A DNA stretch of 64,000 bases, taken from contig NIVC01001907.1 in the NCBI GenBank assembly GCA_002269645.1, positions 124,001 to 188,000 on the forward strand, in the 5' to 3' direction. Shown here in pieces: positions 20,580-45,836 of the stretch. Every line of letters starts with the position of its first letter. Within the stretch, counting starts at the first letter, position 1. Under the pieces are notes generated by a model. It was not told the origin of the DNA. It did not search any database and saw nothing but the letters and a program-made list of their open reading frames with translations. Origin of the DNA: Macrostomum lignano (lineage: Eukaryota). The position numbers and the translations under genes were made by a program.

Positions 20580-21366
20580 TAGGGATGTTGACCCTGGGAG
20601 TGCTCCCCGGGGAGCTTGTAGGGGAATACCGAATACTCTCCAGGGAATTGAACTGGGGACCCTGGAGAGAAAAAATATGAAAAAATGCATTTGTAACTTA
20701 ATTTTTGCCATTAAAATAAGAAACTGATTCACAGAAAGCTGATTGAAACTCTGTCTATGCTCTTTTACCGCATAATTGCTTATTTCAATGTATTACATGT
20801 ATTTCAAGCACAACACACGTTTGATTGTTTCTTCACTAATAAGTCATTCAATCAAGCAAATTGCACGTAGAAAAGAAACCCGTCAAGAAAAAGAAACCTT
20901 ACTGACTAGTGACTGCTGTGTTGGTCTGCATTGACGGCTTGACGCAGGCGCTGCGCTGCATCATGCGTCAGGCACTGATGCATAGGGGGGTGTCATACAT
21001 ATACTCCCTATTAGACAAGGACAAAATGGTGATTTACATATATATGCAAGAAATAAAATTCCGATTATAAAAACAGTCTCATTCATTAATTATCCTCTCA
21101 CGAGCGTAGCTGTTTAGCATGCATTCCAACAAATGCACCTTTCCGATAAAGGTGCGCGCACGATTTCGTGATGCTACATTGCCAAATACAGTTTTAAAAA
21201 ACATTGTTTAAAGTTTTTACCCCTGCGCCTTGAACATGTAGTACAAAGCTTAAATCAAAGTTTAAAAAAATCCACTTACAATCTAAGTTATCCGCCGTTT
21301 TTACTTATTTTTTTCTTTTCACCGGGGTCCCCAATAAGATAATTCCCTGGGGAATCGACATCCCTA
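20580..21366. mobile_element. Possible non-autonomous hAT-like element
   Basis: Inverted terminal blocks TAGGGATGT / ACATCCCTA, CCAGGGAATT / AATTCCCTGG and GGGGACCC / GGGTCCCC; the putative 8-bp TSD matches only 5 of 8. Confidence 0.45.
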
Positions 21367-24300: not shown

Positions 24301-24541
24301 GTGGTTCAACTTCAGCAGTTTTAGCCTAGTTTATTATTTATATGCCTTGCCTGTCATTGACTGATTTTAGGGTTTTACATAAAAGCTGTCTAGTCAATGT
24401 TCCTGATATTTTTTTACAAGATGTTTAGTTTAGTTTAGGGCAATATGATTTTAACCTAAACAATAACAAAGTAGGCCTAAATAAAGTGTTATACAAATAA
24501 ATATTCCTTTTGATCTTACATTTTCTAGTCCTAGCCACCTA

Positions 24542-24984
24542 CCATAGCTGGGAAGGTGGCAGTTTTTGGTGAATTTTCCGGTGCAAATTGGCATTTTTTT
24601 GGCACACACAGCGCACACGGCGTACAAGGAAAAATTGGAAATGCTCTGGCGGCGCACATGGTGCATGGCGCTGAAAAAATATATAGTTACACTTTGTTAT
24701 ACTTTGCAAAATATATAGTGTCAGGCCTAATTCCATAATTCGTAAAATAAAATTACGTAAATTACGTGAATCATGATATAAAATATGTAAATGAAATTCA
24801 AATTTGTCTACCGTAAATTCCTTACGGTAGAATAAATACCTTACCTTACCTTACCTTACCTTAGACTTACCTTATCATGGTGCGCTGCTGCGCACAAAAT
24901 CTTTTCTTCATGGTGCACGGTGCACAGTGCTCAAAAGCCATCAAAATAGTTCCGGCGCACACTGTGCCACCTTCCCGACTATGG
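24542..24984. mobile_element. hAT-type MITE
   Basis: TIRs CCATAGCTGGGAAGGTGGCA / TGCCACCTTCCCGACTATGG, flanked by a perfect 8-bp TSD GCCACCTA (24534-24541 and 24985-24992). Confidence 0.88.
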
Positions 24985-27204
24985 GCCACCTATAGTTCAG
25001 CTTGTGTATTAGTGTATGGCTATGCCAGGTTTAATGCTGGAAAAAATGACAAGACCTCATTTGTATGTTGGGTTTGTGTACTAATATAAAAATTGTAATT
25101 TGACACAATGTATATAGGCCTACTATGCCATATATCTGGAATACAAAATCCCAAGGTAAATAAACAAATCAAATAATATTTTTTAGGTAGGCCCTAAACA
25201 AAAAGAATAATTATGGCTATATTATTATTTAGCTAAATGCTTTGCCATTTAATTAGTACTATTATATATATATATTCATAAATTATATATTCTTAATTTT
25301 GGGTTGGCATTTCTTTAATTTACCTTGGCCAAGCCTCTTACCACCTGGCTAAATTGTCCAGGCTGGCTAGGCTAGATGTTAGGTAGCCTATATATAAGCT
25401 CTGAGTTGGTAAGTCTTATATAATATTTATATATACTAACATAATAGTGCTTTTTATATTGTATACTACTAGTATCAACTTAGGAAAATCATATTTGATT
25501 ATGATAAGGCCTATAACCTAGGGAATGATAGCTTATAGAACCATAGCTTAAGATACTAATACTTGGATAAAAAGTGATTGAACCTTATTTTCCCAAGGCA
25601 CTTACTTGCTTTAGATAAAGAATTGTTTAAAGGTTTTGTTTTCAATTGCTTATATTGCTTATATTGTAATAGCAATGCAATTGCTATAACTTCAACCCAA
25701 GTTGAACCTTGGGTTATAGTCAAAAAGCAAAGTCCCATTGTTCTAATCCAAACTATGGCCAGAGTTTTGAAGGTAGAGACTACTTAAGTAATTCTACTAA
25801 TCAATTCTTAGTGCTCCATTTTTAAAGACTCTAAGGTTCCTAAAGCCCCTAAGCCTCCTAAAGCCTTACTACTCAATCTAAGCATGCTATGCTTGAAACT
25901 GCTCATGTATCCCTGCCTTTCTTTAAGAAGTTATATGTGTTATCCCATCCTAAATTCCTTTCTTCATTTATGAGTCACAATCCAACAACCCCTAAAACTC
26001 TTAACTCTTTAAATGCAAACTTCTCAGTCCTTAATCTTCTAATTCCTTTTTATCCCTCATTCCTTCTTTTTATTTATGAGCCACAAGGACCAATATTCAA
26101 ATATTGATTTGCTCCAAATCTTCACCCTACAATAAAGTAATTATTTAGTATTTAGATTGTCAGCTCTCTAATTTCAATTCAAACTGAATATTTGATCAAT
26201 TCAATTTGATGCTTATATTTTGGAATGTGTCTTATCTTTATTATAAATGTTATTACTTAGGAATGAATGATTTAATCATTGCAAAGTGGGATTAAGATCC
26301 CAAAGGGAAATCCTAGGATTTTCTAATCCTAGACCTAGACAATTGTGATCCTAGGATTTAGGCCTAATCAAGGATCTTGGCCTATTCAGGATCTTGGGAT
26401 CTCTAGATTGTATTCCCTTGTCCCAGGCTATAGGAAAAAAAGTTATAACAAGGGTTTCTATCTATTGTTTATTGTTAAAAGTAAAAATAAGTTCTACTTC
26501 TACCTATGTTACAAAGCTGAGTGATATAGATATAACAAAAGAGTTCCTTGCCTTTGCTTTTAAAGGTAATATTGCTCTACATGTAATAGAAGGTGTACAA
26601 TAATGAATTGCTATGATTTTACTATCACTATTTGATTTGGATGTAGACAATTGGACTACCAATCAATTTGAATACTAATAAAATGATAGACTGGGTTTTT
26701 TGCCAGACAGTATAAAATTGTACTTTGTATCTATTTAAAGGCATAATTTTAAGGCTTAAATTCTTTTACTTAAACCACTAGGAATATAGACACATTTAAA
26801 CATTTTCTTCTATCTAAAGTATGCCTTGACCTCTTGTCTCATTTTCTAGATGTTATTTTAAGGCAGTGCAAATGAAAGCAATTTTTATTTTAACCATCTT
26901 TTTATCAGTGTATTTTAATGGATGACTGCATTTTTAATTAGATGATTTTTAATCAATCAACCAATTTTTCAACCAAAATTTCAATCAACCATTGATAAGT
27001 TGTTAAAAATATAAACAAAATAATTAGTGGTAAGATGTATGGGAATTATTATTTTAGATATGCTTATATTTCTAATAATAGTTTTTAATTATCACTTATT
27101 AAAAAAATAAGTCTATTATCCTATTACTATCTTATTTTAATTCTATAGCACTGATATTATATTAAATATTTTGTAGTAGACAAAATAACTATATCATATT
27201 TTTG

Positions 27205-27515
27205 CAGCTAAATCACTATCAGATAAACTGACAGCAGATAAAATTCTGCCGACTCCCTTGAGCAGGCATACAAGCGCGCGGATATGTTACGCAAGCACAC
27301 ACTCACATAGGAGTGTACAGCGGCCCTAACTTTATCAATTGTTAGGCATGTACACTTCACTGCACCTTGGGGGGGTTGGCTCTCAAGGCCGTTAATTGCA
27401 CAATTGAGCCAAGCCAAGATTCCAATCCAGCCCCAAATTAATGTGGCTGCACTTGGAATCGAGCCTGGGTCGCGGCACACCAGAGCAGCTGCGCTACCGC
27501 TGGGCTATGGCCCAT
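27205..27515 (-). mobile_element. tRNA-derived SINE
   Basis: Minus-strand head GGGCCATAGCCCAGCGGTAG...CCCAGGCTCGATTCC (A and B boxes) without a proper cloverleaf, followed by a non-tRNA body. It is a CpG-containing island inside a CpG-free region. Confidence 0.6.
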
Positions 27516-29599
27516 TTCCCAAGTGCTTTTTAGTCTTCTAGTGATGCTTTGCTCTGGTCAGAGAAATGCTCTAGTTAACAAAGTAGTTGAAATGATAAAT
27601 GATATGGAAATAAAGCATAAGGTAATACTTGACTTTAATTATTTGACAAAAACTACTAATAACCTTGGAGAAAAAACACTTGAATATGCTATTAAAAAAG
27701 TTGTAGAATAGTTTAGAGGTTTTGTTTTTAAAAATAAGTGAAGATTGAATAAAAAAAGGATAGACATTTAAGAATGATTTACTAATATAAATATAATTAG
27801 TTATTGCAATGCTTCTATTTCAAAGCAGCCAAAGTTATTATAGTAGTTCTTTATTTAGTATATTTAGATTTGTCCTTTTAAAATTTTCTATTGTTGCTAC
27901 CAAAATTGTTATAGAGTTGACTTAATTTCAAATCTTGTCATTGCTAGTAAGTTATATCAAATGTTATGATTCTCTCTTAAGTTATTTTAATAAAGGTCAC
28001 TAATTTATAACAAGACTGTAATATATTTACTGGTTTTTAACCTAAGTTCTCAAGAGTAACTCTGAGCATAATTATTAGAATAAGTGTGAAAAAAGTTTAA
28101 CTATATGCCTAATATTTCTTACTTCATAGTCGCACCTATTGTTATGTTTGTAGCATTTTTATTATACCAATTGGTCTATTACTAGTGTGGAATTTCTTTT
28201 TTCCAAGAATAACTCTTTTTATAAATATCTTAGTAGCTCATAGTTATCTAGGTATTCAACTATCCAGTCCTTAGGCTTTACTAAGATTTGAAGGTCATAA
28301 CCTTATTATATATACAGTGTATATATTTTTAAGTTTTTCTTTATTTTACTTTGATCTCTTTAGTATTCTACTTATTAATAGTATATATAGTATGTTTTTC
28401 TTTAACTTCACTCAGAAAATTTTATTGTCATTAAACAATTCTCAATATTTATTTTTAACACACTTCACACTAGACCAGGCGGCAGGCCTTTCAATAAGCA
28501 ATTACAAAGTTAGTCACTAAGCTGTTAGTTGATACTGTATTGCTAAAAATTATATCTATTTTACTAAATCTGTGGTTCATTTAAATTAAAAAGCAAATGC
28601 AAGTAGTATGAAAATTATCTATATATTTGAACAAATTATTTCTTGTAGATTCTCAAGAAATTTATTTTGTACAAAGTTTTATTAAAAGCAAAAAATAATG
28701 AAGGCCTTCTACATTGATAAAAATCTATGGAAAGAACATTAAAATTTAAATAATGCTAAATTGAAAAAAATCTATCATGGTTAAAAACCCTATAAATTAT
28801 TTCACTTAACAACTACAAGTTTATATTAATTATAGCTATAAAATACCCAGATTTTTTTATAAGTGACACCTAAACCACTTTGTAAACCACTTGTGTTTGA
28901 ACTAATCTTTCAAAGAGCCATTGTGTAAGTTTAAAAATAAAATTTTCAATACTAGTCTGCTAGTAATTCTGTTAGAATTTCAAACTATAGACTACTATTA
29001 GTAGGCTGATAATTATGGAAAGCATTCCAAATTCAAAGTACAGAATGTTATTGATGCTGGCTTTGCCTTTTAAAGTGTCTATGCAGTCTAACTAGTGATG
29101 GGTGCAAAGATGTCACAGACCCATTCCAATCCCCTATTCAAGAAGTAATGCGGAGAAGTGTGTCGAACTTTAACGCCCAAGATCTTTAATAGAACTTATT
29201 TAACAAAATGAAAGTTCTTAACTACAAGTTTAAAAAGTGGGCATCAATCGAAAAAAACTCAGCTATTTCGGTGTGTTGTTGTATGTTTGTGGAGCAGTAA
29301 AAGTAAACAGCAATTCATATAGACGGAAACCATTTGTAGCAAATAGAGAGCTTACAGACTCATCATAAATCATATCTTAAGTAGAAGTAGAATCGCTAGG
29401 GAAAGAGTGGAACGGCTCGGAGCAGTGAGGATACAATCTTCTCAAGCCTGCTCACTGCCTAACTAAAAGGTGACTGAGGAGTGTAAGGACAGCATCTCTA
29501 AGGTTGGGCGCTCTGGTTTAGAATTGGAAATGCAAAGCATTCTCTGCGCGTCTCGTATTCCCTGCTGCGTGTTGCCTTTGCTCGCCTAGGCCCATATTT

Positions 29600-29801
29600 C
29601 TCTTTTTCACCACTTCAACCAGCCTTGCTCTCCGTCTTCTCTCCACTCCCCCATTCTCTTCCGTCCTGCCTCTCTTGTGTTGTGTGTGTTTTTTTCGTCT
29701 CGAGGCTCGCTAAATCGATTTTGGCTATCGCTTTCTCTTTATCTCCTTAAGCTCCGAGGGGTTTGCCCTTCATCACTATATTCTATATTATTATCACTAT
29801 A

Positions 29802-29836
<35 letters not shown>

Positions 29837-30930
29837 TTCCGTCTCTCATCCTCTCTCCCTCTATCCTCTCCTTCTCCCTATCTCGTCTCTGTAGTCTCTT
29901 ACGTACTTTCTTTTCCTTTTTTACTGGACGCGAATTTGTTTCTTTGCTTCTCCACCCCCCACCCCCCCCTGCCCGGTCTGGTTTTCCACCCTTTTCCATC
30001 TCTACAGTTTTTTCTCCTTTTTTCTCTTACTTGTTTTGTGCGCGCGCTCAGGCGCTCGACTTTACTTTTCCCTTCGGAGAGGGGGGGGTAGTCTTGCCTT
30101 TCTTCTTTTTGCTGACTTTCCTGTCTTGCCCAGCTCTTTCTGTCACTCTTTCTGTCTGTCTATCTCTCAGCGCATTCGTGTGAGTGTTGTGTGCTTCCTT
30201 TGCCTTTCTCTCTTTTTTATGCTTTCCTCGTACTTCTGTTCCAGCCCATCCCGCGCCGAACTGAGGGACGGAGTTGCCAGGCTATTGGGGAGAAAAAAAT
30301 AGAAAGCAGCTGAAAGAATCGCGAACGGAGACAGGCAGAGAAAATGAGATAGAATGACTGAATGTTGTTCAGAAGAGAAGGGCGTATTGCGGGGGACTTC
30401 GCTCCCCTCAGCCTCTCCTATTTCCATCATTCCGCAGTGTGTTAGGTCGCTCCCTTCTGTATCCTTTCAGTTCTCTTTCTTCTTTTTTCTACTCTGCCCA
30501 AACTGCGCCAGCCAGCTCCCCTTTTCCCCTCCTAAGTGTGTATAAAGGCCAGCAGACTCAGGGCGAAATGGGGGCGAGGCAAAAAAAGGAAGCAGCCGGG
30601 CGCCAACCTCATCCTAGATCCCCTCTCTCTTTTCTCTTTCTCTCTGTTCTGTCTGTCTTTCCCCCCTCACATACACACACAAATCCTTCAACTCTAGAAT
30701 GGGATCGGGGAATGGCTTGTGGGGGGGGAGAAGGGAAAAGGGACCCTTTTTCTCCCTTTGCTTCGTAGTCTCTTTCTCTTCTGTCTGTCTGTCTCTCCCT
30801 CCCTCTCTCACTGCCACTCTCCCTTGTATCCTCCACTCGCATTGCCAGACCCCCTCGCTAAGATGCTCTTCCCAAGAGAGAGAGAGAGAGAAAGGAAAGG
30901 ACCGCACACTCACACGCTCGCATAAATGTA
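29600..30930. repeat. CT/GA-rich low-complexity region upstream of the zinc-finger gene
   Basis: (CT)n tracts and polypyrimidine runs; ORFs here are compositional artefacts. Confidence 0.75.
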
Positions 30931-31106: not shown

Positions 31107-31526
31107 ATGGCATCTGCCGCTGTCGAACCGCTGCTTCCGCAGCAGCAGCAGCAGCAACAACAACTACAGCTGGGCAACCTGGATAAGATGCTGGTGCACG
31201 TGTTGCGCTGTCCCCAGTGCACTTTTCTAACCCTGGCCCAGAAGCGGCTGCAGCAGCACATCGCCGAGGCGCATCCTGGCGAGCCAATATTCTACACCCT
31301 GCACACCTGCGCCGTTTGCAGCGCCGTCACCACGGAGAAGCACCTGATGGAGGAGCACAGGCTGCTTTATCACTGCGGCGAAACTGAAGACTCTCTTCTG
31401 CTCACCGCTCTGCCTGCGGTTGTAGACGGAACTGAAAATCACGCCAACGCTGCCGCCGTCTCCGCCGCCGTCTCCGCTGCCGTCTCGGCCGCTGCAACCT
31501 CCCTCGCTGGCTCCATCGAGTCCAAG
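31107..31526 (+). CDS. C2H2 zinc-finger protein, first coding exon
   Basis: Poly-Q, two C2H2-like fingers (CPQC...HIAEAH, CAVC...HRLLYH), donor AAG|GTAACC, phase 0. Confidence 0.8.
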
Positions 31527-31659
31527 GTAACCGGAGCACTGTAGCTTAACTAAGAATAAGCTAGATTGCGTAAGCATGCTTATGTGCCTACTTAATTAGT
31601 AGCATCGTTAGAACCTAGCGCTATGTTGTGTATTTAAATTCTCTATTTAGCTAATTTAG

Positions 31660-31937
31660 CCCGCTACCCCAATAAAGGGCCACCCACCACCCCAATATAG
31701 GGCTACCCGCCACCGTAATATAGAGTTACTCACCACCCCAACGCCACCCTAATATAGGGCTACCCAACAACCCAATATAGGGCTACCCAACAACCCAATA
31801 TAGGGCTTACCTCCACCCCAATATTGATTTACCCGCCACCCCAATATAGGGCCACCCGCCACCCCAATATAGGGCCACCCGCAACCCCAATATAGGGCTA
31901 TCCACCATCCCAATAAAGGGCTACCCACCACCCCAAT
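31660..31937. repeat. 22-nt minisatellite (CCACCCCAATATAGGGCTACCC), left part
   Basis: Direct; the same array resumes at 40538 after the transposon. Confidence 0.92.
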
Positions 31938-32221
31938 CCCGTGTGGCCATCCGATCAGGTTTTTCGCCCGGTAGGCGATCGGGATTTTTGCCCGGTTTGT
32001 AATACATTTTTTCCTATCTAAAAACCCGAAAATCCTCGGGAAAGTGGTCTCGAAAACGGACGAAGACGGCAGTTTCGTCTGGTTGTTCGTCAGGAATTTC
32101 GTAGAGGACATCAGGTATTTTCTCGGGTTTCTCTTCGGCTACTCAAACTGATGAGTACCCTGAATAAAACCCGACAAATGACCGGATGAAAGTGCAATAG
32201 CAGAACCCAGCAAATAACCGG

Positions 32222-32520
32222 GGCAAAATCAGACTAAAACCTAACGAAAGCGACACGACGACCCAACCGGACGAATATCCGGAGCAAAATCAGACTAAAA
32301 CCTAGCGAAAGCGGCACGACGACCCAACCGGACGAATACTCGGAGCAAAATCAGACTAAAACCTAGCGAAAGCGGCACGACGACCCAACCGGACGAATAT
32401 CCGGAGCAAAATCAGACTAAAACCTAACGAAAGCGACACGACGACCCAACCGGACGAATATCCGGAGCAAAATCAGACTAAAACCTAACGAAAGCGACAC
32501 GACGATCAAACCGGACGAAA
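32222..32520. repeat. 61-bp subterminal tandem repeat (about 5 copies) inside the transposon
   Basis: AAAATCAGACTAAAACC starts recur at 32225, 32286, 32347, 32408 and 32469. Confidence 0.92.
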
Positions 32521-32818
32521 AACCCTGCATCCCTATCGAATTGTGTCTACTCTCGGAAATATGTAGTGCCGACTTAGTAAAACATCTACAGTGCGCTTCT
32601 GTCAACGGATACCGTGAAGAGTAAAGAAGTAAGACAATTGACAGTTAGTGTTAATACAAAATATGTAACGTTCCATCTTGCAATTCATCAAACTGTTCCA
32701 AATCACCTATAAGATCAATATACTCCTCTGTTTTTTTTTATTCCAAAGATGTTGTAGAATACAGTCAGTAGGCGCATAGTCGCTAGTCATCTAGGCGCAT
32801 AAATGCGGGAATTTAAAA

Positions 32819-34710
32819 TCACTTCTGACTGGCCAAAAGTATGTTCAGAAAGTCGCCGCAGCTGACTGTGCCGTCCATGGCGCTCTGATCGTCGTCCCCC
32901 TCCAGATGCCGCATTTCGACCTCTCTGGCATTTCCGGCGTCATCGCCGTCATCGGCGTCATTGGCGTCAGATGCAGCTGTTGTATTCGAGAGGGTTGGCT
33001 GACAGACTTCGCGGCTCTGAGCAGAGTCAGCGGAGTCTATAATGACGACTGTTGTGGCCTTCGGCTTTGGCGGTTTCGGCTGCTTCCGCTGGGGGGTAGG
33101 GGCGGAGCGCGTTGGGAGTTCCAGTCTCTGCCGTGCAGTCGCAGTGCATTGCGTGAACGCCTGACTTAGACTGTCGGCAGTGCACTGCACCCCGGCGTTC
33201 GCGAGCCACACACGTACTGCAGCCAATTTTCCCGGGTTTGCGGGTGAAGATGTGGCCTGACCGGGCGCCTTGCGCCCGGACAGTGTGCAGCAGGCGAACT
33301 CCCTGTCCGTGAAGACGGCACGCAGGGCAGCTCGGAGAACGGCCAGCGTCACAGACTTTCGGAGTGCAGTAAGTTTTGCGTCCTCGCCATCCTGTTTGGC
33401 TGGCACTTTTTTGTAGGCTTCTAGCCGATCTTCCGCATCGTGCCGCTTATTCAAAGCTACCTTAACGAAGCTCTGCTGCTCAGAGAATGGCACAAGAGCT
33501 GAAGCAGCTGTTAGGTCAACGTTCGGCGTGGCGGCGTCGCAGGCATCTTTCAGAGCGCGCGTCTGCCCTGCGGACAAGCTCTGCGTTACAGTGAAGGACA
33601 TGGCGTCCTGCCTGGAATCGCTGGCGTCGCCGTCATCACCGCCATCGGCGTCATTGGTGTCAGATGCAGCTTTTGTACTCGAGCGGGCCGGCTGAGAGAC
33701 TTCGCGATCGCGGGCATTCTGGGAAAGCAGCTCTGACCCCTGAATAAGCAGCGAGTTGCACTGCTGCATGCTGCTGACCAGCAGCACGTTACGATGCTGC
33801 TCGTCCTCCAGTTGGCGTAAAAGCGTCCGCTCCATACGATTCGCGACACGAAGCTGCTCCGTTAATAGTCGGACGCTTTCTCGCTGATTCGTTTCTTCAA
33901 CTGTGCTGTGCTGTAACTGGCTCCCTAGAAAAGTATGCGGTGGTTCAAACAAAAAAGGCACTATACCCGACCTGAAAGTGCAGAAGTAACGACCAACAAT
34001 TGATGGCACTCACGCAGGGTGTCTATAAGCGACGACTGTCGCTCGTTCTCTATAGCAAACGTCCGGCAGGATGCACAGGCACGTGGAAGTTCCGATGGCT
34101 GAGCGTGTACGTTTCCTAGGACCGCTGTGCCGGTCGCGATGCTTCTGGAAGCGAACGGCCCACGTACTAGTGTCCCGAGCCATTTTTTCGCGGCCTTCCT
34201 GTTCGCCTTAGCGACGACAATTAAGACTTCGCTGCCGACATCGACGTTACTCGGGGACTCGCGTTTGCGTCCAACAATGTCATCGCGCGTGCTGACAACT
34301 TCTGTTTTTTCGAAATAGTTGGAGTACTTAAAAATAAAGAATCGCGGTACCGCTTCACGTTCGTAGGGCACCATGTCATGCTGTATGAAAACGTCATCCC
34401 GTTGGGTGCCCTCTGCGACAGCAGACGAAGAAGGGCCCGAAGTCTGTGCAGCAGACATGGTGTCAGTATCTTCGATGGCTGACAATAGCGGATCCTGCAG
34501 TCGACGTGATTTCTCGGCAGTACAACCGAGAAATTGACTCAATGACTCATCGTCATCAGTCACAGCTTTGCGCTTCTTTCCACCGGACTTACTCGACGGC
34601 GCCTTTGTTGGAGCTGATTTGGAGGTCGGCTTCGACTTCGACTTTGAAGTGGACGTGGAATTTGAATTCGACTTGCCGACTACGGCAGTAGTCTTCTTTC
34701 CTGTGCCCAT
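32819..34710 (-). CDS. Transposon accessory protein with coiled coil and BEN-like domain, about 600 aa, two exons
   Basis: Exons 34014-34710 and 32819-33924 join through a phase-1 GTGAGT...TTTTCTAG intron. BEN-like segment: LRAALRAVFTDREFACCTLSGRK...NPGKLAAVRVWL...TATARQR. Confidence 0.7.
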
Positions 34711-34946
34711 TAGGATTAGGGCAGCTGAAAAAGGTGAGTTTTTTGTGTCAATACTGTGTTCTGTGTTCACATGGGTGAAATGTAATCGTACTCGTACGTT
34801 ATACTTTAACTAGGCCTGGACTCAAGAGTAACAATTAAGGCTGTCGGTTTCCTCCTCAATCAAAAAGTCCGTACAAATTGTGCCGGCAACAAGGCCTTGT
34901 GTATTTATCAGCATATGCTGGTATACATACAAACGTGCATGTCTAA

Positions 34947-35125
34947 CGTCCATCATCTCAATGTCATCATCATCTCAATGTCGTCATCATCTCAATGTCA
35001 TCATCATCTCAATGTCGTCATCATCTCAATGTCATCATCATCTCAATGTCATCATCATCTCAATGTCATCATCATCTCAATGTCGTCATCATCTCAATGT
35101 CATCATCATCTCAATGTCATCAATC
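34947..35125. repeat. 17-nt minisatellite (CATCATCTCAATGTCAT) between the transposon accessory genes
   Basis: Direct. Confidence 0.9.
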
Positions 35126-35164
35126 CATCAATTGAGGCAGTCTCCAGTCCATCAATCGCAGTAG

Positions 35165-35950
35165 TCACTCGTATTCAGTGCGGGGTCTCGGTGACAGACC
35201 CCGAAGCGGCCTTCGACGCCGCTTTCTCACTTTCAATTGATCCAACGGTACGGGAGGTGGTGATGGCGGCATCTCAATCGCGAAGAAGTTTGGCGCTTGC
35301 ACGATCCGCCTGTGTCGGTGGCGGCCGTGCAGCGCTAAACGGCGTGCTCGGCTAGTCGGCGACAGCTCCGCGTACCATGAGGCGCAGTCCGGGCAAGTTT
35401 GCGCAGGTAGTAGGCGTCGCTCGTCCCAACGCCTCGACTCAAATGACGGTGGAGCAGCCGGTGGTAGCCGGTTGTAGTCCTCCCACGTATACTTGGACTC
35501 AGCAGTGGCTCGCGCGCGGGTCGACGTTGGTGGCGGGCCGGGAGAGTGACCACCGATTGTGGTGTCGCTGCCGTCATCGGAGTCGACGTTGGCCTTGGGA
35601 ACGTCATGCAGCGGCCAAGTAAAGGCTGTAGAAGCAGTAAGCAGAGACTGGGACGCAGCCTGAGTCGACGTTGGTGGCGGGCCGGGAGAGTGACCACCGA
35701 TTGTGGTGTCGCTGCCGTCATCGGAGTCGACGTTGGCCTTGGGAACGTCATGCAGCGGCCAAGTAAAGGCTGTAGAAGCAGTAAGCAGAGACTGGGACGC
35801 AGCCTGAGTCGACGTTGGTGGCGGGCCGGGAGAGTGACCACCGATTGTGGTGTCGCTGCCGTCATCGGAGTCGACGTTGGCACGGGCATCCCCGTCAGCG
35901 ATCATTCGGTCGAAAAGTTTTTGCCAGTCAATTATGGGGCGATCCGACAT
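35165..35950 (-). CDS. Transposon-borne 261-aa protein with CtIP/Sae2 C-terminal-like domain
   Basis: Intact ORF. RWDERRLLPAQTCPDCASWYAELSPTSRARRLALHGRHRHRRIVQAPNFFAIEMP aligns with the CtIP C-terminus (ERRKL.GHTC..C..YY...E.KL..CSRHR...TPENFW.V.FP; recalled). Internal 144-bp repeat in about 2.5 copies. Confidence 0.78.
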   Translation of the reverse strand: MSDRPIIDWQKLFDRMIADGDARANVDSDDGSDTTIGGHSPGPPPTSTQAASQSLLTASTAFTWPLHDVPKANVDSDDGSDTTIGGHSPGPPPTSTQAASQSLLTASTAFTWPLHDVPKANVDSDDGSDTTIGGHSPGPPPTSTRARATAESKYTWEDYNRLPPAAPPSFESRRWDERRLLPAQTCPDCASWYAELSPTSRARRLALHGRHRHRRIVQAPNFFAIEMPPSPPPVPLDQLKVRKRRRRPLRGLSPRPRTEYE

Positions 35951-36791
35951 GATTTAAATCCAATGGGGTCAGTCTGAAAAGGGTTTTGACCACCTATAAG
36001 AATATTCTTATTCTTATGCATATGAACACAACAAAAAATGAAGTGAATATAGTATACAGAAGTAACACGTAAATAAGCTACTGAAATATTTTAAAATTAT
36101 ATACGTATATACGTATGTTATCGTTATCGTTCTGGTCTCTCACTTCTACGAGTATGGCTCTTGTTCTACTTCAAATATCAATGTGAGAGCCAAATAACTA
36201 AGGCGGCGGATTCAACTGACTTTTCCTGATGAGGCAAACACTTGGTGTTAACTTACAGACCGTTGTATTTGATGGTCACAATCTCGAGATGTTATCTTAC
36301 AAAATATAGTGTCTAAGATGGAATTCCAAATAAGAAGCTCGTTCAGCTTAAGTTACAAAGGGTTTCTAATTGTTCGGGTAAACCGAAGGTTCAGTCTATT
36401 GTAGAACGTGAATTGGGTGTCCTCAGCTTTTGCTATTTGGAGCGCATTCATTGGTTAAAATACATTCAATCTGGATGGGAACTTTCTAGAGCCAAAATGT
36501 ATCACTTCACTACATATGACTCATAAAGCATCTCATCCAGATGCTTCTGGAAACCGGACTCAATTTTTTGGTTTAATTGCATCTACTATTACGTGCATAT
36601 ATATACATTTTTACAAAATCGCTAACAATTAGAACGACTACTACAGTTTGTTAAAAAATATAATAGAAATTTGATTATTTTTTTGCCAATCGTAAAGTAA
36701 GGAAAAAACGAAAGGAAAATACGTTTATGCTGGCAATCAGTTATCCTAGCCTGTCAATCAGTTATCCCATTGCCATGGACGCCAGCAGACT

Positions 36792-39700
36792 CTACGAATA
36801 GCCCAACTGCGGATGGGCCAGCAGAGCTACTTTTGTGTCGGTGACGACACAGACGCCACGAAACTGTGACAGCCCCACATGAATCGGGTCGCCGAGGTAG
36901 CTCAAGTCGCCGAAGGGATCGCATGCGAATACTCGGAAGTGCGCGAGTCGACAGCCTCGATTAGGTGACGTTGTGGCAACCTGTGCTAGTTCCTCCAGCG
37001 GGTCGACGGCCGCGAGAACTGGCAGTACAAGCAGTCCGAGCCTAACCTGCTCACCTTGACATTCGATGGTTTGCACTCGGCAGAATCGGAAATCCGTCGT
37101 AGTGTCACCTTCGATGGCCACGAAGCCTGCCGCATCCTGACATCCGGGAGTGAAAATTCGTATTGTCCAACCGGATTTCAGAGTGGCACTGTGCCATCCG
37201 ACTTGCCAGCGCTTCGGTCGACGAAGCACGACATCTGGAAGGGTGAGTACTTCTGTTCGACGGAATAATTCCTCTTCGTCTTGCTGATCCCCGTGCCCGA
37301 TCAGTCGCGCTCGCGCTTGGATGGTGCCGATGTGGCGCTCCACGGCGCCAACCAGCTCGACGTCGGTGCGCCGCGTCCCATGCAGGCGTTTTTGCAGGCG
37401 CAAGTGCGTGCTTTCGAAAATTCCAGCCGATAGGCGGTGCGCAGAGCCGGCCAGATGGACGTATGTCAGCATGTGGCAGCACACCTGATGAGCATTATAG
37501 GTTAGTGCTCTTAAGGAGTACAACCTATACAGTTTGTCGTGGAAGTGGCGCAATGCAATCTCTACGTGCCGCAACTCAGACAGAGGCGCATAATCGGCAG
37601 TCATCCAGAACACTGCAGCGGAAAGAAGTAACAGATGCTGGTAGTGGGCGGGTGGTAGGACGGCTTCCAAAACGAGGGGGCCGTAAGCCATCAGCCACAT
37701 TTCAAACTCGTGCCCACGGAAATTGCGGAGGTCACTCAGTGGACGCACTTCATGGCGTTGGACGTTGATGGGCAGCCGGATGCGGAGCAGCGTCTCATCG
37801 ACCTGATGTTGAAGCCGGTGCAGGTCCGGACAATTAGTTTCTCCTCGGTCCGGCTTCTCGGCCCGCACCAGAAATAATTGGTACATTATCATCCGGACCA
37901 GACCTAGGTGCAGCTGGTGGAGGTAACACGGCGGACATCCGCGCATGAAGTCAAAGCCCGGGAGGCGTCCTAACGGAGAGTGGCCTCGGACACCCAATGT
38001 GTCTGTGTTCTGGTGCCGAGCACCTGCTAGGTGTTGCTCCGCTAATCTGCGCGTATCTGCCATGCTCCGCAGGACAGTTTGCAGACAACCTAGACGTCGA
38101 GCAGCATTCTGCATTGCTGGCGTTAAGCCGACGTCGAAGACACGCCCAGAGCCTGAAGGATGAAGACGCGTAGCAATGTAGCACTTCTCGCAGCCGTAGA
38201 TAGCCGTGCATCGTCGCATGCGGAGCGCATCTGCACGAGCCGGTGAGTCGAACATTGCTAGCAACGGATGGAAGCGTATCGTACGCTGAACTCCATCAGC
38301 GTCAGTGTACGTTACGCCCCGGATGCGTAAAGAAATCAGCGCGTCGACGACCACCGGAAGGAAAGCCGCTGAACTCACTTTGGTCTTAGCAGCCCAGAGC
38401 CCACAGATTATGACATAGCGCAACTTGACATGATCGTGAACCTCGTTGATGCTTAAGTAGACTGGACACACCTCTACCTTGCTGGTTGACCGTGCTGGAA
38501 ACCCATCAGAGCTCAGAGTATACGAGAGGTCGCTCTTAGCAACTAGGTTTATCGACTCCCGAAACTGTCTGTACAGGTGACTGTTGTAGAAATGGATGGT
38601 GTCTTCGTGCGGATTGAAGTCGGAAGGAAAAGTCAAATTATGCAGCAGTCCACATGACTCTATGTGAGTTCGGATCTGCTTTCTAATGTTGAAAACCCAG
38701 AAGTTTGCGACTCTCATTGATCCGCAGTCACTGCAATGTCCACCGTTTTGACTGCAGTCTCCTCGGTAGTTTACGTAGCACTCGTTGCACACAGTGACGC
38801 ATTTTGCGGAGCCGATGTAACTCTGGGCGGATTTTAGCGTCCGCCACATAGTTCTTGCAGTGCGCGGAATTCGACTTCCCGGAACCAGACAATGCACAAG
38901 ACGTAGAAGTCTGGTTATTTTTTTACTTGGGATTCCAAGATCAATGGCGCAGTCGTTGATATGACACACAGCTTCACCAATGGTGCCCGTGATGGGTTCG
39001 CCGTTGTGCCACGGTAGCTGTAGCCAGGGATCAAGAACTGGCTGTTCCTGGCCATCGCTGTCGCTGGAGTCAAGTGACTCAGCGTCACTGCCGTCACTGG
39101 AGTCTGTGGGAAACGCGCGATAGTTTTTCTGTATCAACGGATATCGGGGCCGCATTTTGCAGATCCTCGATGCTACTCACCATGCTCAGAGGGCTCAGAG
39201 TCGGGTGTCTCTGTACCGTCGCTGCCATTGCGGCCAGCGCTGTTTACGGACTCAGCGTCACTGCGGCTTTGGTCGCCTCCACTGCTGCCGTCACTGGAGT
39301 CTGTGGGAAACGCGCGATAGTTTTTCTGTATCAACGGATATCGGGGCCGCATTTTGCAGATCCTCGATGCTACTCACCATGCTCAGAGGGCTCAGAGTCG
39401 GGTGTCTCTGTACCGTCGCTGCCATTGCGGCCAGCGCTGTTTACGGACTCAGCGTCACTGCGGCTTTGGTCGCCTCCACTGCTGCCGTCACTGGAGTCTG
39501 TGGGAAACACGCGATAGTTTTTCTGTATCAACGGATATCGGGGCCGCATTTTGCAGATCCTCGATGCTACTCACCATGCTCAGAGGGCTCACTGTCACCG
39601 GTGTCTACGGACTCGGCACCTCTGAGAAGCTGCGACGATGCTGCGACGACAGTGCTACTGCTGCGCGAAGTACTAGGTACAGCGCGACTAACCGGGGAAC

Positions 39701-39797
39701 GCGGTCGGTCAGTCAACTCAGCGCAGGCCGCGTCAATATTTTGTTGCAGTCGTCGCGCCCGCTGATAAAATCGTCTGTCGCGTCGTGATCGCTCCAT
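36792..39797 (-). CDS. CACTA/EnSpm-type DDE transposase, about 924 aa spliced
   Basis: Exons 39575-39797, 39378-39497, 39181-39300 and 36792-39103, all introns phase 1. Motifs: CxxC zinc knuckles, SSDGFP, CPVYLSINE, GLW, FDSPAR, GCEKC, YLHQLHLG, TYNAH, SAGIFES. Confidence 0.92.
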
Positions 39798-40537
39798 TGT
39801 AATTATTTCAGGTTTCTTAATTACCAGCACTGGAAATTCATGGAACTTTATTAACAAAGGCTGCTACGTACGCAACGCCTAGCGGGCCAATTCGGGGATG
39901 GGACTTTGCTTATACATTTTTGTAAAAGAGGAAATCAACGTTGGAATCCCACAGTAACATGCAGCCTTCAGAAATGTGTGCGATGACAGCATTAAAATGA
40001 CAATATATTTTTATTCTCAGTTTACGTGAACTACGCTCGTAATAACATACGAAGACGCTCATATGATATATATAAAGATGAGCGGAAAAAATACTGCAAT
40101 AGAACAAAACAGGAGCACATTACAGGACATGCAATTACAAGAAAATCTTCATGTCAATTGTCAATTATACACTGTGTCTCCCATACCATTTTCAACCCAA
40201 TCCTGAATTAAAGGCTTTCATCAGCTCTTTTCTCCGGCTCTTGTCCGGTCGAAGAACCAGAGAAAGAACCGGGCAAAATTCCAGGCGGAAATGTTAGTTT
40301 ATCTGCTTTTACTCCGGATTTCCCTGCGTTACTAAACTGGTTCCAAATCTGGCGAAGGACCGGGTAAAAAACCAGAGCACTCGTACGGTTTTTCCTCCGG
40401 AATTTCGCCTGGTTTAGAAAGGCAGAGAAAAACCGGATAAATTCGCCTGGTTTATGTTCTTCGCCTGGAAATGGGGCAAAAAACATAGCAAGCCAGAGCA
40501 AAACCGGGCGAAAAACCTGATCGGATGGCCACACGGG

Positions 40538-41025
40538 ATATAGGGCTACCCGCCACCCCAATATAGGGCTACCCACCACCCCATTATAGAGTTACCCACC
40601 ACCCCAATATACAATATAGGCCACCGCCACCCTAATATAGGGCTACCCAACAACCCAATATAGGGCTACCCGCCACCCCAATATAGGGCCACCCGCCACC
40701 CCAATATAGGGCCACCCGCCACCCCAATATAGGGCCACTTGCAACCCCAATATAGGGCTATCCACCATCCCAATAAAGGGCTACCCACCATCCCAATAAA
40801 GGGCTACCCACCACCCCATTATAGAGTTACCCACCACCCCAATATACAATATAGGCCACCGCCACCCTAATATAGGGCTACCCACCACCCCAATATTGGT
40901 TTATCCGCCACTCCAATATAGGGCTACCCACCACCCCAATATAGGGCTACCCACCACCCCAATATAGGGCTACCCGCCACCCCAATATAGAGCCACCCGC
41001 CACCAAAGTATAGGGCTACTCGATA
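40538..41025. repeat. 22-nt minisatellite, right part
   Basis: Same unit as 31660-31937. Confidence 0.92.
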
Positions 41026-41059: not shown

Positions 41060-44000
41060 ATCGCAATGGACTCCGTACTGCTTGGCAACCTGTCCTCAAT
41101 GCTTGAGAGCGGCAGTCACGGGCCTATTGCCGCAATTCCCAACCAGCCCGTATTCCCTACTGAGTACATTACCGCAATGCCGGTTGCCTCTACCGCTGCC
41201 AGATCGCCAGCCGCCAGTTACCCCAACGGTCTCCATGGCAACAATAATAACAATAACAACAGTACCCATAGCAACTATAATAAACGCCGTTGCCAACGCG
41301 GTATCCAACAGCGCCAGGTTGCTCGGGCTGCCGCTTTCCTGGGCGTCGATGCCGTTGCGCCACTTATCGGCCGTCAGTCCCAGACTCCCAATCAGCATCA
41401 TCACCAAAAGCAGCAGCAGCAGCATACTCTACCGCCAAATGGCGTCGAATTAATGGAAGACGAGGCCTACCTTGGCGAGGACAGCGCCAAGCCCTGGCTG
41501 TGCAGAGTTTGCAGCACCTGTTTTCCGCATCAGGCCAGCCTGAGGCGGCACATGAAGTTGCACGACACTAATAAAAGATTCAAGTGCGACAAGTGTCATA
41601 AGCGATTCTCTTATCGGTGAGTTTTTGCCCCGGCTGTTGGACAAAATGCCCCCTTTATTTGTTCAATGTGATTTTTAAGCCGCTTCACAGCCGCTAATAC
41701 TCAAAATCTCACCCTGAGAATAGTCTCAATCTCACCCTTAGAATCGCCTCACAATCTCACCCTGAGAATCCCCTCACAATCTCACCCCAAGAATCGCCTC
41801 ACAATCTCACCTGAGAATAGTCTCACAATCTCACCTGAGCATAGCCTCACAATCTCACCCTGAGAATCCCCTCACAATCTCACCCTGAGAATCCCCTCAC
41901 AATCTCACCCTGAGAATCCCCTCACAATCTCACCCTGAGAATCCCCTCACAATCTCACCCAGAGAATCGCCTCATAATCTCACCTTGAGAATCGCCTCAC
42001 AACTCACCTGAGAATAGTCTCACAATCTCACCTGAGAATAGCCTCAAAACCTCACCCTGAGAATCCCCTCACAATCTCACCCTGAGAATCCCCTCACAAT
42101 CTCACCCTGAGAATCCCCTCACAATCTCACCCTTAAAATCGCCTCACAATCTCACCCTGAGAATCCCCTCACAATCTCACCCAGAGAATCGCCTCATAAT
42201 CTCACCTTGAGAATCGCCTCACAATCTCACCTGAGAATAGTCTCACAATCTCACCTGAGAATAGCCTCACAATCTCACCCTGAGAATCCCCTTACAATCT
42301 CACCCTTAAAATCGCCTCACAATCTCACCCTGAAAATCCCCTCCCAATCTCACCCTTAAAATCGCCTCACAATCTCGCCTGAGAATAGTCTCACAATCTC
42401 ACCTGAGAATAGTCTCACAATCTCACCTGAGAATAGTCTCACAATCTCACCTGAGAATAGTCTCACAATCTCACCTGAGAATAGTCTCAATATCTCACCC
42501 AGAGAATCGGCTCACAATCTCGCCTGAGAATCGTCTCATAATCTCACCCCAAGAATCGCCTTATAATCTCACCCTGACAATGCCTTAGAATCTCATCCTG
42601 AGAAAAGCATCACAACCTCACCCTGAGGATCGCCTCATCGTCATAATCTCACCCTGAGATTCGCCTCAAATCACCCTGAGAATCGCCTCACAACCTCACC
42701 TGAGAATCGCCTCACAATCTCACCTGAGAATAGTCTCATAATGTCACCCAAAGAATCGCCTTATAATCTCACCATGAGAATGCCTTAGAATCTCATCCTG
42801 AGAATAGTATCACAACCTCACCCTGAGGATCGCCTCATCGTCATAATCTCACCCTGAGATTCGCCTCAAAATCTCACCCTGAGAATCGCCTCACAACCTC
42901 ACCCTGAGAATCGCCTCACAACCTCACTCTGAGAATAGTCTCACAATCTCACCCAGAGAATCGCCTCACAATCTCACCTGAGAATAGTCTCATAATGTCA
43001 CCCCAAGAATCGCCTTATAATCTCACCCTGACAATGCCTTAGAATCTCATCCTGAGAATAGTATCACAACCTCACCCTGAGGATCGCCTCATCTTCATAA
43101 TCTCACCCTAAGATTCGCCTCAAAATCTCACCCTGAGAATCGCCTCACAACCTCACCCTTAGAATAGTCTCACAATCTCACCCAGAGAATCGCCTCACAA
43201 TCTCACCTGAGAATCGTCTCATAATGTCACCCCAAGAATCGCCTTATGATCTCACCTTGAGAATCGCCTCACAATCTCACCTGAGAATAGTCTCACAATC
43301 TCACCTGAGAATAGTCTCACAATCTCACCTGAGAATAGTCTCAATATCTCACCCAGAGAATCGCCTCATAATCTCACCTGAGAATCGTCTCATAATCTCA
43401 CCCCAAGAATCGCCTTATAATCTCACCCTGAGAATGCCTTAGAATCTCATCCTGAGAATAGTATCACAACCTCACCCTGAGGATCGCCTCATCGTCATAA
43501 TCTCACCCTGAGATTCGCCTCAAAATCTCACCCTGAGAATCGCCTCACAACCTCACCCTGAGAATCGCCTCACAATCTTACCCTGAGATTCGCCTCAAAA
43601 TCTTACCCTGAGATTCGCCTCAAAATCTCACCCTGAGAATCGCCTCACAACCTCACCCTGAGATTCGCCTCACAATCTCACCCTGAGAAGTGAGAATAGT
43701 CACATAACCCCACCCTGTAGATCAATCGCATGTTGGCCTCAAACCGACTTAAATCGCGTCCCCTAATTCGTCCCGCAGCTGCAACCTGATGCTGCACTAC
43801 CGCACCCACACTAACGAGCGCCCGTTTCACTGTGTAACCTGCGGCGCCCGTTTTAACCAGCGAGTCCATCTGCAGAATCACATTCAGAATGTGCACAGCG
43901 GACCCGGCGGCGTGAGGCCAGCCGTTACTCACGAGTGCGACATCTGCGGCGCCTGGTTCGTGCAGATCAACGCCCTGACTCGGCACCAGCGACTGCATCA

Positions 44001-44349: not shown

Positions 44350-44955
44350 CATTGCGTGTTGGTCATTGCCTCCTACCTCTTGTGATCATTGCCTGTCGGT
44401 CATTGCCCTTTTTTGATCATTGCCTGTCGGTCATTGCCCTTTTTTGATCATTGCCTGTCGGTCATTGCCCTTTTTTGATCATTGCCTGTCGGTCATTGCC
44501 CTTATGATCATTGCCTGTCGGTCATCCCCCTTATGATCATTGCCTGTCTGTCATTCCCCCTTATGATCATTGCCTGTCGGTCATTCCCCCTTATGATCAT
44601 TGCCTGTCGGTCATTCCCCCTTATGATCATTGCCTGTCGGTCATTGCCCTTTTTTGATCATTGCCTGTCGGTCATCCCCCCTTATGATCATTGCCTGTCT
44701 GTCATTCCCCCTTATGATCATTGCCTGTCGGTCATTCCCCCTTATGATCATTGCCTGTCGGTCATTCCCCCTTATGATCATTGCCAGTCTGTCATTCCCC
44801 CTTATGATCATTGCCTGTCGGTCATTCCCCCCCCTATGATCATTGCCTGTCTGTCATTGCCCCTTATGATCATTGCCTGTCTGTCATTGCCCCTTATGAT
44901 CATTGCCTGTCGGTCATTGCCCCCTACCACTTATGATCATTGCCTGTCGGTCATT
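44350..44955. repeat. About 31-nt minisatellite (TGATCATTGCCTGTCGGTCATTCCCCCTTA)
   Basis: Direct. Confidence 0.93.
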
Positions 44956-45647: not shown

Positions 45648-45836
45648 AGGACGAATCTCAGGGTCGATTCCCATCTAAGAACGAATCTCAGGGTCGATTC
45701 CCATCTAAGAACGAATCTCATAGGGTCGATTCCCATCTAAACACGAATCTCATAGGATCGATTCCCTTTTAAAGACGAATCTCATAGGGTCGATTCCCAC
45801 CTAAACACGAATCTCATAGGGTCGATTTCCATCTAA
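45648..45836. repeat. 30-32-nt tandem repeat (ACGAATCTCAGGGTCGATTCCCATCTAAG)
   Basis: Direct; about 6 copies. Confidence 0.85.

Follow-up and report, generated by a model that had tools for sequence, protein, structure and literature searches.

INTRODUCTION

That DNA transposons capture host genes is a familiar finding in plants; in animals it is rarely documented. RPA-like genes in Helitrons are one example of accessory cargo of cellular type. Genes for TET/JBP dioxygenases are another, carried by fungal KDZ, Plavaka, EnSpm, hAT, Harbinger, and Helitron elements (PMC12730594). Here we describe a gene of a different kind in a 64,000-nucleotide stretch of DNA from the flatworm Macrostomum lignano (GenBank assembly GCA_002269645.1, contig NIVC01001907.1, positions 124,001 to 188,000 of the forward strand; "the window" below). 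By sequence comparison, we show that an open reading frame (ORF) at 35165-35950 is a predicted, truncated CtIP/Sae2-family gene that lies inside a DNA transposon bounded by terminal inverted repeats (TIRs), and that the nearest match to its conserved domain is the last exon of the CtIP gene of the host lineage. The ORF had been noticed in an earlier reading of the letters alone (the sequence-only reading), which knew of no described transposon with this cargo. Our literature search, with a coverage short of all journals, also turned up no published case of a mobile element with a CtIP/Sae2-family gene.

Sae2 must oligomerize in vivo (PMC6167383). A monomeric, phosphorylated fragment, Sae2 ΔN169, binds Rad50 and stimulates the MRX endonuclease to about one third of the wild-type level, and this residual activity is lost in S267A (PMC6167383). 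The Nbs1 FHA domain binds, in a CK2-dependent manner, SDT motifs that lie in acidic disordered segments, and the pSXpT motifs of Ctp1 bind that domain likewise (PMC8079451). On the transposon side, the hAT, Transib, RAG, and MULE transposases leave hairpins on the flanks that are opened by host enzymes (PMC5499845). In yeast deleted for mre11 or sae2, no Ac/Ds excision revertants were recovered (PMC3299998).

RESULTS

The ORF is predicted to encode a CtIP/Sae2 C-terminal domain

The ORF is intact and starts with ATG, as the sequence-only reading had it (Table 1). That reading had also aligned the C terminus of the product with the C-terminal domain of CtIP/RBBP8, through a peptide (RWDERR...AIEMP) that it put at about 35265-35435 and that indeed maps there, to 35267-35431. 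We searched residues 150 to 261 with phmmer against 1.84 billion representative proteins, reporting matches at E ≤ 1e-3. The searched set represents about 15 billion clustered proteins, the M. lignano proteomes among them. Four proteins were returned. The best was P0004, which is M. lignano BOX15_Mlig004387g2 (E = 4.1e-23, 57% identity, Pfam SAE2 score of 14.3 bits). It was followed by P0005, a 315-residue metagenomic protein with an N-terminal coiled coil (E = 2.4e-10, 43% identity, SAE2 score of 37.6 bits, above the cutoff). The weakest was P0007, a CtIP C-terminal fragment from the frog Staurois (E = 7.1e-4, 40% identity, 51.8 bits). The remaining protein, P0006, consists of zinc-ribbon repeats and a Mab-21 domain and has no SAE2 match (E = 1.5e-4, 39% identity). 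We rejected it as spurious, its similarity being confined to the surroundings of the CxxC motif.

We then aligned six sequences: the ORF product, P0004, its homeolog P0008, P0005, and two frog CtIPs. Fifteen columns are invariant, including C186, C189, R210-H211-R212, F222, P228, and the R244-R245-x-x-P248 tail. The CxxC and RHR motifs, which the earlier reading had singled out, are thus invariant and stand in conserved order and spacing. Together with the three E values, these columns bear out the proposed relationship. The C-terminal ~100 residues of the ORF product are confirmed, at the level of sequence, as homologous to the CtIP/Sae2 C-terminal domain, beyond chance.

The Pfam family PF08573 (SAE2; gathering cutoff, 19.8 bits) did not match the full-length ORF product. 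It was the only Pfam family matched by the isolated C terminus, with profile positions 7 to 35, the CxxC half, aligned. The SAE2 search that had been proposed as a check on the homology therefore stays below the cutoff, and it is the exhaustive phmmer search that is significant. A word-indexed homolog search with the full ORF product returned only P0001 (described below), and repeat words dominated the candidates. The same search with the C terminus alone gave no match; P0004 was likewise missed by the index. A profile scan of JGI metagenome contigs with the alignment of the domain found no relatives. Sequence searches of PDB chains with the ORF product, its C terminus, and a four-sequence profile matched no CtIP C terminus. 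An isolated CtIP C terminus is expected to be disordered.

The conserved domain is related to the last exon of the host CtIP gene

P0004 and P0008 are the products of Mlig004387g2 and Mlig004387g1, respectively, the CtIP genes of M. lignano (g1/g2: PAA88737.1, PAA54340.1). Both genes are multi-exon and lie between acetyl-CoA synthetase and EMP24 genes, on two homeologous scaffolds. Because the host CtIP occupies this ordinary locus, the transposon copy is separate from it. The sequence-only reading had allowed that the ORF might be the only host CtIP, misassembled between repeats; the conserved synteny of Mlig004387 on two scaffolds elsewhere rules this out.

The whole homologous region falls within the last exon of the host gene (12467-13069 of L003, the g2 locus). 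Capture of genomic DNA therefore suffices to explain the ORF, and no intron had to be removed. We rejected a retrocopy origin: neither a poly(A) tract nor a flanking duplication accompanies the ORF, and the homology is to a single host exon.

Over 98 aligned domain columns (93 to 104, depending on the pair), the ORF product is 58% identical to host CtIP, 41% identical to P0005, and 33% identical to frog CtIP. The corresponding values for host CtIP are 42% to P0005 and 30% to frog CtIP. At 26 to 34 positions the ORF product agrees with host CtIP against the outgroup, and the cargo therefore groups with the macrostomid gene. At the nucleotide level, the ORF and the host exon resemble each other only in patches of ~39 nt. 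Over 101 codons, pN is 0.32 and pS is 0.81. The latter value is saturated and hence marks the split between the ORF and the host gene as ancient.

Relative-rate tests show the transposon copy to be, as judged from these alignments, no faster evolving than the host gene. With P0005 as the outgroup, there were 12 unique changes in the ORF product and 9 in host CtIP (p = 0.5 to 0.7). With frog CtIP as the outgroup, there were 7 and 11, respectively (p = 0.35 to 0.5). With saturated synonymous sites and no rate rise, the ORF is not a decaying fragment. We also simulated neutral evolution from the host exon. Saturated divergence brought identity to ~17%, and less than 1% of the simulated sequences kept an open frame. 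The observed identity of 58%, together with the absence of a rate rise, therefore shows that the ORF lineage has for most of the time since the split been under purifying selection comparable to that on cellular CtIP. Neutral evolution of the domain had been named beforehand as grounds for giving up the idea of a cargo gene; the pS and pN values, the relative rates, and the simulation all speak against it.

The window and the host CtIP scaffolds have a repeat in common (92% identity over 154 bp). Window positions 6136-6498 are a dispersed repeat that is also found on the M. lignano scaffolds NIVC01002929 and NIVC01000176 (79 to 92% identity).

The predicted protein keeps the C-terminal motifs and has a new N-terminal half

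The C-terminal domain keeps the CxxC and RHR motifs, an NFF motif that corresponds to the NFW of other CtIPs, an [ST]P site, and a basic KRRRRPL tail. The [ST]P site is common to the three flatworm-type sequences, being PPSPPP in the ORF product, PPTPEP in the host protein, and PPTPSP in P0005. The segment aligned with the CDK site reads VQAPNFF in both the ORF product and host CtIP, STPENFW in frog CtIP, and RTPPHFW in P0005. Relative to the host protein, the element copy has deletions of 4 aa and 2 aa, both in frame. The alignment shows an N-terminal coiled coil, or tetramerization domain, in P0008 and P0005, with no counterpart in the ORF product.

The host genes merit an observation of their own. 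Host CtIP (L003/L005; Mlig004387g2/g1) has Ala aligned with T847, and the flatworm-type CtIPs have in common a PPTP site that follows this position by about 9 residues. The alignment suggests that the regulatory phosphosite was relocated in the macrostomid CtIP lineage.

Residues 24 to 144 of the ORF product are encoded by a 144-bp tandem repeat. Every 48-residue unit contains the acidic sequence VDSDDGSDTT, and the ORF product has three exact SDT motifs in total. By analogy with the known ligands, these motifs are candidates for binding to the Nbs1 FHA domain. No CtIP is significantly similar to the N-terminal half. A similar acidic motif, SVDDEGSET, is nevertheless encoded by the last exon of the host gene, in a position collinear with the SDT region.

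Upstream of the ATG there are an in-frame TAA at 6 nt and an in-frame TGA at 21 nt, and therefore no N-terminal exon could be joined in frame. The sequence TTTTCAG, which resembles a splice acceptor, is found ~25 nt upstream of this start codon, and ORF269, the next gene of the element, has a similar site. The CtIP-like ORF is an island of 61% GC between spacers of 35 to 40% GC.

The transposon has perfect ends and a 2-bp target-site duplication

The sequence-only reading had placed the ORF in a TIR-bounded DNA transposon. The perfect 35-nt TIRs and the 2-bp AT duplication support this. The two inverted repeats are perfect over 31936-31972 and 40503-40539 when the outermost AT on each side is included. 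The element itself starts with CCCGTGTGG and ends with CCACACGGG, so its termini are CCCG...CGGG and neither CACTA nor CA..TG. It was inserted into a 23-bp satellite with the consensus CCCCAATATAGGGC. When the two flanks are joined, they rebuild the 23-bp unit with exactly one extra AT, and we therefore read the 2-bp AT as the target-site duplication. We considered whether the element also takes in the 23-bp arrays beside it and rejected this, because the arrays are direct and in phase on both sides. The CtIP-like ORF sits 3.2 kb and 4.6 kb inward from the two TIRs.

The element contains tandem arrays of 197-, 144-, 61-, and 17-bp units, which show that several internal tandem duplications occurred in it very recently. 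The 197-bp repeat triplicates the start codon of the transposase-like ORF with its first ~43 codons and a GTGAGT donor-like site. From its sequence, the element is apparently autonomous and recently inserted.

The transposon occupies, in antisense orientation, an intron of ~9.5 kb in a C2H2 zinc-finger gene of the host, and the insertion could alter splicing or expression of that gene. Downstream of the zinc-finger exon are further satellites, at 41700-43689 (25 bp, 80 copies), 44379-44955 (30 bp, 19 copies), and 45651-45836 (32 bp, 6 copies). Elsewhere in the window, the GC skew is -0.44 at 6001-8000, with ORFs open in three frames at 6968-8010. A 12-kb AT-rich block spans 18001-30000 (GC of 0.31 to 0.35, versus ~0.5 elsewhere).

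The core genes of the element resemble those of the CMC clade

The four minus-strand ORFs follow one another in the order 787 aa, CtIP-like 261 aa, 269 aa (ORF269), and 396 aa (ORF396). The 787-residue protein is 44% identical to P0002 (E = 5e-196) and 24% identical to P0003. Invariant in all three are D217, D303, C322-x2-C325, H556-x4-H561 (x3 in P0003), and E581. The motif order D, D, C(2)C, H(3-4)H, E is the signature of the CMC/CMCT clade, whose members have 2- to 5-bp target-site duplications and termini that are usually CA..TG (PMC12730594). Assignment to the CACTA/Mirage/Chapaev/Transib clade is thus defensible on motif order, at the level of the clade. The CACTA label of the sequence-only reading fits the motif signature and the 2-bp duplication; it does not fit the CCCG...CGGG termini or the lack of a Pfam transposase match. 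With the full-length protein and its core segments, no transposase or other Pfam family was matched at E ≤ 10. A PDB profile search gave no match, and the transposase alignment found no relatives among the JGI metagenome contigs scanned with it. An AlphaFold2 model built from the three-sequence alignment had a mean pLDDT of 33.5 and was not used.

ORF269 and ORF396 overlap by 49 nt (33961-34009) in different frames. By their layout they are probably two exons of one second core protein gene, separated by a short intron. ORF396 had been called a BEN gene, and the CtIP-like ORF was said to lie between it and the transposase. The ORF does lie between genes of the element. The BEN assignment is unconfirmed: the conserved segment of ORF396 scores 13.7 bits against BEN (PF10523; E = 0.075), below the cutoff of 23.2, and the L001 homolog of ORF396 (below) has no BEN match. 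ORF396 also scores 23.5 bits against HTH_64, for which the cutoff is 27, and a PDB profile search gave no relevant match.

A related element has the core genes without the CtIP-like gene

P0002 is encoded on L001, a 10.2-kb contig (1-10198) from a Tara Oceans marine metagenome (ENA ERZ976238). L001 is a complete element, from a marine eukaryote, with 33-nt TIRs (97-129 and 10011-10043, CCCGCTG...CAGCGGG) and CCGG-rich subterminal repeats. No clean target-site duplication is visible at its ends. On one strand it has homologs of the transposase-like gene, ORF269, and ORF396, in that order, collinear with the window element and with the same two-part arrangement of the last two. Its spacer of ~1 kb between the transposase and ORF269 homologs contains only tiny ORFs. 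L001 thus keeps the three core ORFs without the CtIP-like gene, which makes that gene a lineage-specific cargo rather than equipment of the family. Because the transposase-like protein of L001 has no Pfam match either, the two elements probably represent an undescribed CMC-like family, judged by sequence, that is present in a flatworm and in a marine metagenome.

A search for other copies had been suggested together with the cargo idea. It gave one second copy of the ORF, P0001, and the cargo-free L001. P0001 is an M. lignano model in UniRef in which a near-identical, frameshifted version of the ORF is fused to an RNA-polymerase-subunit domain. That domain is absent from the window, and there must therefore be at least one further, degenerate copy at another locus. 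Searches of the rest of the window and of ~46 kb of M. lignano scaffolds with the element (tblastn and blastn) found no copy or fragment. Exact-protein look-ups of the ORF product, the 787-residue protein, ORF269, ORF396, and P0001 found no other genomic copies on record.

Table 1. Positions of the transposon, its genes and repeats, and the flanking host features in the window
Feature	Position	Strand	Remarks
Whole transposon, 8,600 bp	31938..40537	minus	All genes on the minus strand; perfect inverted repeats
Left TIR, 35 nt	31938..31972	plus	CCCGTGTGGCCATCCGATCAGGTTTTTCGCCCGGT; 100% complementary to 40503-40537
Right TIR, 35 nt	40503..40537	minus	Pairs with left TIR
Left target-site duplication copy, AT	31936..31937		Left flank ends ...CCCCAAT
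Right target-site duplication copy, AT	40538..40539		Right flank starts ATATAGGGC
23-bp satellite, insertion target	31666-31937 and 40538-41019		ACCCCAATATAGGGCTACCCACC; same orientation and phase on both sides
CtIP-like ORF, 261 aa, ATG start	35165..35950	minus	From the ORF list
Predicted CtIP/Sae2 C-terminal domain, residues 153-253	35192..35494	minus	CxxC, RHR, NFF, PPSP, KRRRRPL tail
144-bp tandem repeat, 2.5 copies, 100% identical	35520..35881	minus	Encodes 48-aa units
17-bp tandem repeat, 10 copies	34951..35122		Directly downstream of the CtIP-like ORF
Transposase-like ORF, 787 aa	36792..39155	minus	Homologs P0002, P0003
197-bp tandem repeat, 2.6 copies, 99% identical	39088..39591		5' end of the transposase-like ORF
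ORF269, 269 aa, core gene	33961..34770	minus	tblastn to L001 7869-8216, E = 9e-13; no Pfam family
ORF396, 396 aa, core gene	32819..34009	minus	"BEN" of the sequence-only reading; tblastn to L001 8710-9330, E = 1e-13
61-bp subterminal tandem repeat, 5 copies	32213..32519
Host C2H2 zinc-finger gene exons, poly-Q N terminus	31107-31527 and 41061-41618	plus	Flank the transposon

DISCUSSION

A possible role for the cargo

The ORF is very probably a captured, CtIP-derived cargo of the transposon. We lean slightly toward its being functional as cargo. The following sequence of events could have produced it. The 3' exon of a macrostomid CtIP gene would have been taken up into the spacer that separates the core genes, two in number, of the element and would then have gained its own ATG and a new N terminus. 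The product would be a monomeric mini-CtIP without the tetramerization coiled coil. It may retain the module with which Sae2 binds Rad50 and activates Mre11 as an endonuclease, consisting of CxxC, RHR, [ST]P, and the basic tail, and may add three acidic SDT motifs of the kind that binds the Nbs1 FHA domain.

Gain of copies by cut-and-paste transposition requires that repair of the donor break use a template in which the element is still present. If the mini-CtIP is coexpressed with the transposase, it could engage the host Mre11-Rad50-Nbs1 (MRN) complex at excision breaks, possibly with hairpin-capped flanks. Promotion of clipping and resection would then lead to copying of the donor site from the sister chromatid or homolog, which would restore the element and raise its copy number. 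The motif signature of the 787-residue protein is common to Transib and RAG1, in keeping with such a mechanism. That the cargo acts in the pro-resection direction, by the full chain of steps set out here, is a tentative proposal to which we would give somewhat less than an even chance. More doubtful is the stronger claim that the transposon has kept a minimal CtIP under selection and so recruits MRN at its excision breaks, with a bias toward homologous recombination that would make a conservative element effectively replicative.

Evidence against a functional cargo, and other explanations

Several observations weigh against this reading. The related complete element L001 lacks the cargo, tblastn of the CtIP-like protein on it giving nothing, and the sole other copy detected, P0001, is frameshifted. 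The protein has no tetramerization domain, which Sae2 and CtIP need in vivo. At the position aligned with CtIP T847 and Sae2 S267 it has Ala or Gln, as does host CtIP. Four residues at a conserved "VV" segment are deleted in the element copy. The N-terminal half is a recent, 100% identical tandem expansion with no detectable homology. The constraint on the domain may predate the capture: it may have acted in another donor species or in an unsampled paralog, followed by recent capture or horizontal transfer. Finally, the isolated C terminus scores only 15.4 to 17.7 bits against PF08573, under the cutoff of 19.8. However, the host CtIPs are also under this cutoff (P0004, 14.3 bits; P0008, 13.4 bits). 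The low score therefore reflects the divergence of macrostomid CtIPs and is not counterevidence to homology; the PF08573 model, as these scores indicate, is insensitive to macrostomid sequences.

Many of these points would be expected if the ORF were a functionless passenger. In this case it would be a Pack-type transduplicate that was recently captured from a diverged CtIP, either an unsampled paralog or the gene of another flatworm before horizontal transfer, and that is open because it is young. Such an origin is possible, although it is not the one we favor. The missing cargo in L001, the frameshift in P0001, and the loss of both the oligomerization domain and the T847-aligned residue all agree with it, and the perfect TIRs and the 99 to 100% identity of the internal repeats make the element look very young. 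Capture of gene fragments by DNA transposons is common and mostly gives nonfunctional copies. In a GC-rich repeat region that is open in several frames, moreover, an open frame alone is weak evidence. However, the exhaustive search of ~15 billion clustered proteins found nothing closer than 58% identity. The ORF also has its own ATG, its deletions are in frame rather than frameshifts, it keeps 15 of the 15 invariant columns, and it shows no rate acceleration. It is a coding island, compact and rich in GC, and like ORF269 it has upstream of it a TTTTCAG that resembles a splice acceptor.

If the constrained protein probably does something, it might also work in the opposite direction. As a decoy, or dominant-negative product, the monomeric module with its three SDT motifs would occupy Rad50 and Nbs1 without bridging. 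Resection or checkpoint signaling would be damped, and end joining or end protection would be favored. The protein lacks the tetramerization domain and a Thr at the aligned CDK site, both of which are needed for full Sae2 activity, and its candidate Nbs1-binding motifs have been multiplied. Against these features stand the partial stimulation retained by a monomeric Sae2 fragment in vitro (PMC6167383), the [ST]P site conserved among flatworms and retained here as PPSPPP, and the presence of the same Ala in host CtIP, so that this change is not specific to a decoy. We consider a decoy improbable.

It is very improbable that the ORF is not cargo at all, as a host CtIP paralog that only seems to lie inside the transposon through nested insertion or repeat misassembly: although the region is extremely rich in repeats, with many tandem arrays, and a single complete copy is available, the ORF lies 3.2/4.6 kb inside a perfect TIR pair whose clean 2-bp duplication restores the satellite phase, is flanked by same-strand element genes in the order conserved in L001, has a second copy next to a different gene (the RNA polymerase subunit that is absent from the window), and coexists with a true host CtIP gene elsewhere.

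Implications of a CtIP-derived cargo

The choice of repair pathway at the donor site has so far been treated as a decision of the host. If a captured CtIP module indeed serves the transposon, then transposons can encode this choice through a resection cofactor of their own. The cargo combines the C-terminal module with SDT motifs and lacks the tetramerization domain, and so would be a natural minimal construct for studies of CtIP and MRN. If a CtIP-derived module of this kind raises homology-directed repair, it would also be of practical interest for genome editing. Should the ORF prove to be a passenger and no more, the capture would nonetheless be unusually old and well preserved for a DNA transposon of an animal.

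Comparison with known systems

The carrier resembles the CACTA/CMC clade in the D, D, C(2)C, H(3-4)H, E order of three homologs, the 2-bp target-site duplication, and the subterminal repeats. Like TnpA/TnpD of En/Spm, it has a second core gene, here downstream of the transposase. It differs from the clade in its CCCG..CGGG termini and in having no Pfam transposase match at E ≤ 10.

As in the elements that carry TET/JBP genes, a gene of cellular origin lies beside a transposase and could plausibly alter how the host handles the element. Unlike the TET/JBP cargo, this gene would encode a cofactor of double-strand break resection. It is known so far from one intact copy, in a single lineage.

The cargo is closest to the CtIP/RBBP8/Ctp1/Sae2 family, especially to Mlig004387g1/g2. 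Its ~100 C-terminal residues are collinear with these proteins and have CxxC, RHR, NFF/NFW, [ST]P, and the RRRxP tail, and both it and host CtIP have an acidic S-D/E-T motif upstream of the domain. In contrast to host CtIP, the cargo is a single exon in a mobile element, has no coiled coil, and has a new, tandemly triplicated N-terminal half.

Like the captures by Pack-MULEs, Pack-CACTAs, plant and bat Helitrons, and Turmoil-1 of Caenorhabditis elegans (PMC2572040), the ORF is a piece of a host gene in a transposon, in this case essentially a last exon in a TIR element. As in Pack-type elements, the parental gene can be identified: it is Mlig004387, with the homology in its last exon. Typical Pack-type captures are recent, are found in nonautonomous carriers, resemble the parent in nucleotide sequence, and are mostly decaying. 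In the window, by contrast, the carrier is seemingly autonomous, with a transposase-like ORF and a partner gene, and the nucleotide similarity to the parent is gone, whereas the amino acid sequence shows a constraint like that of the host gene.

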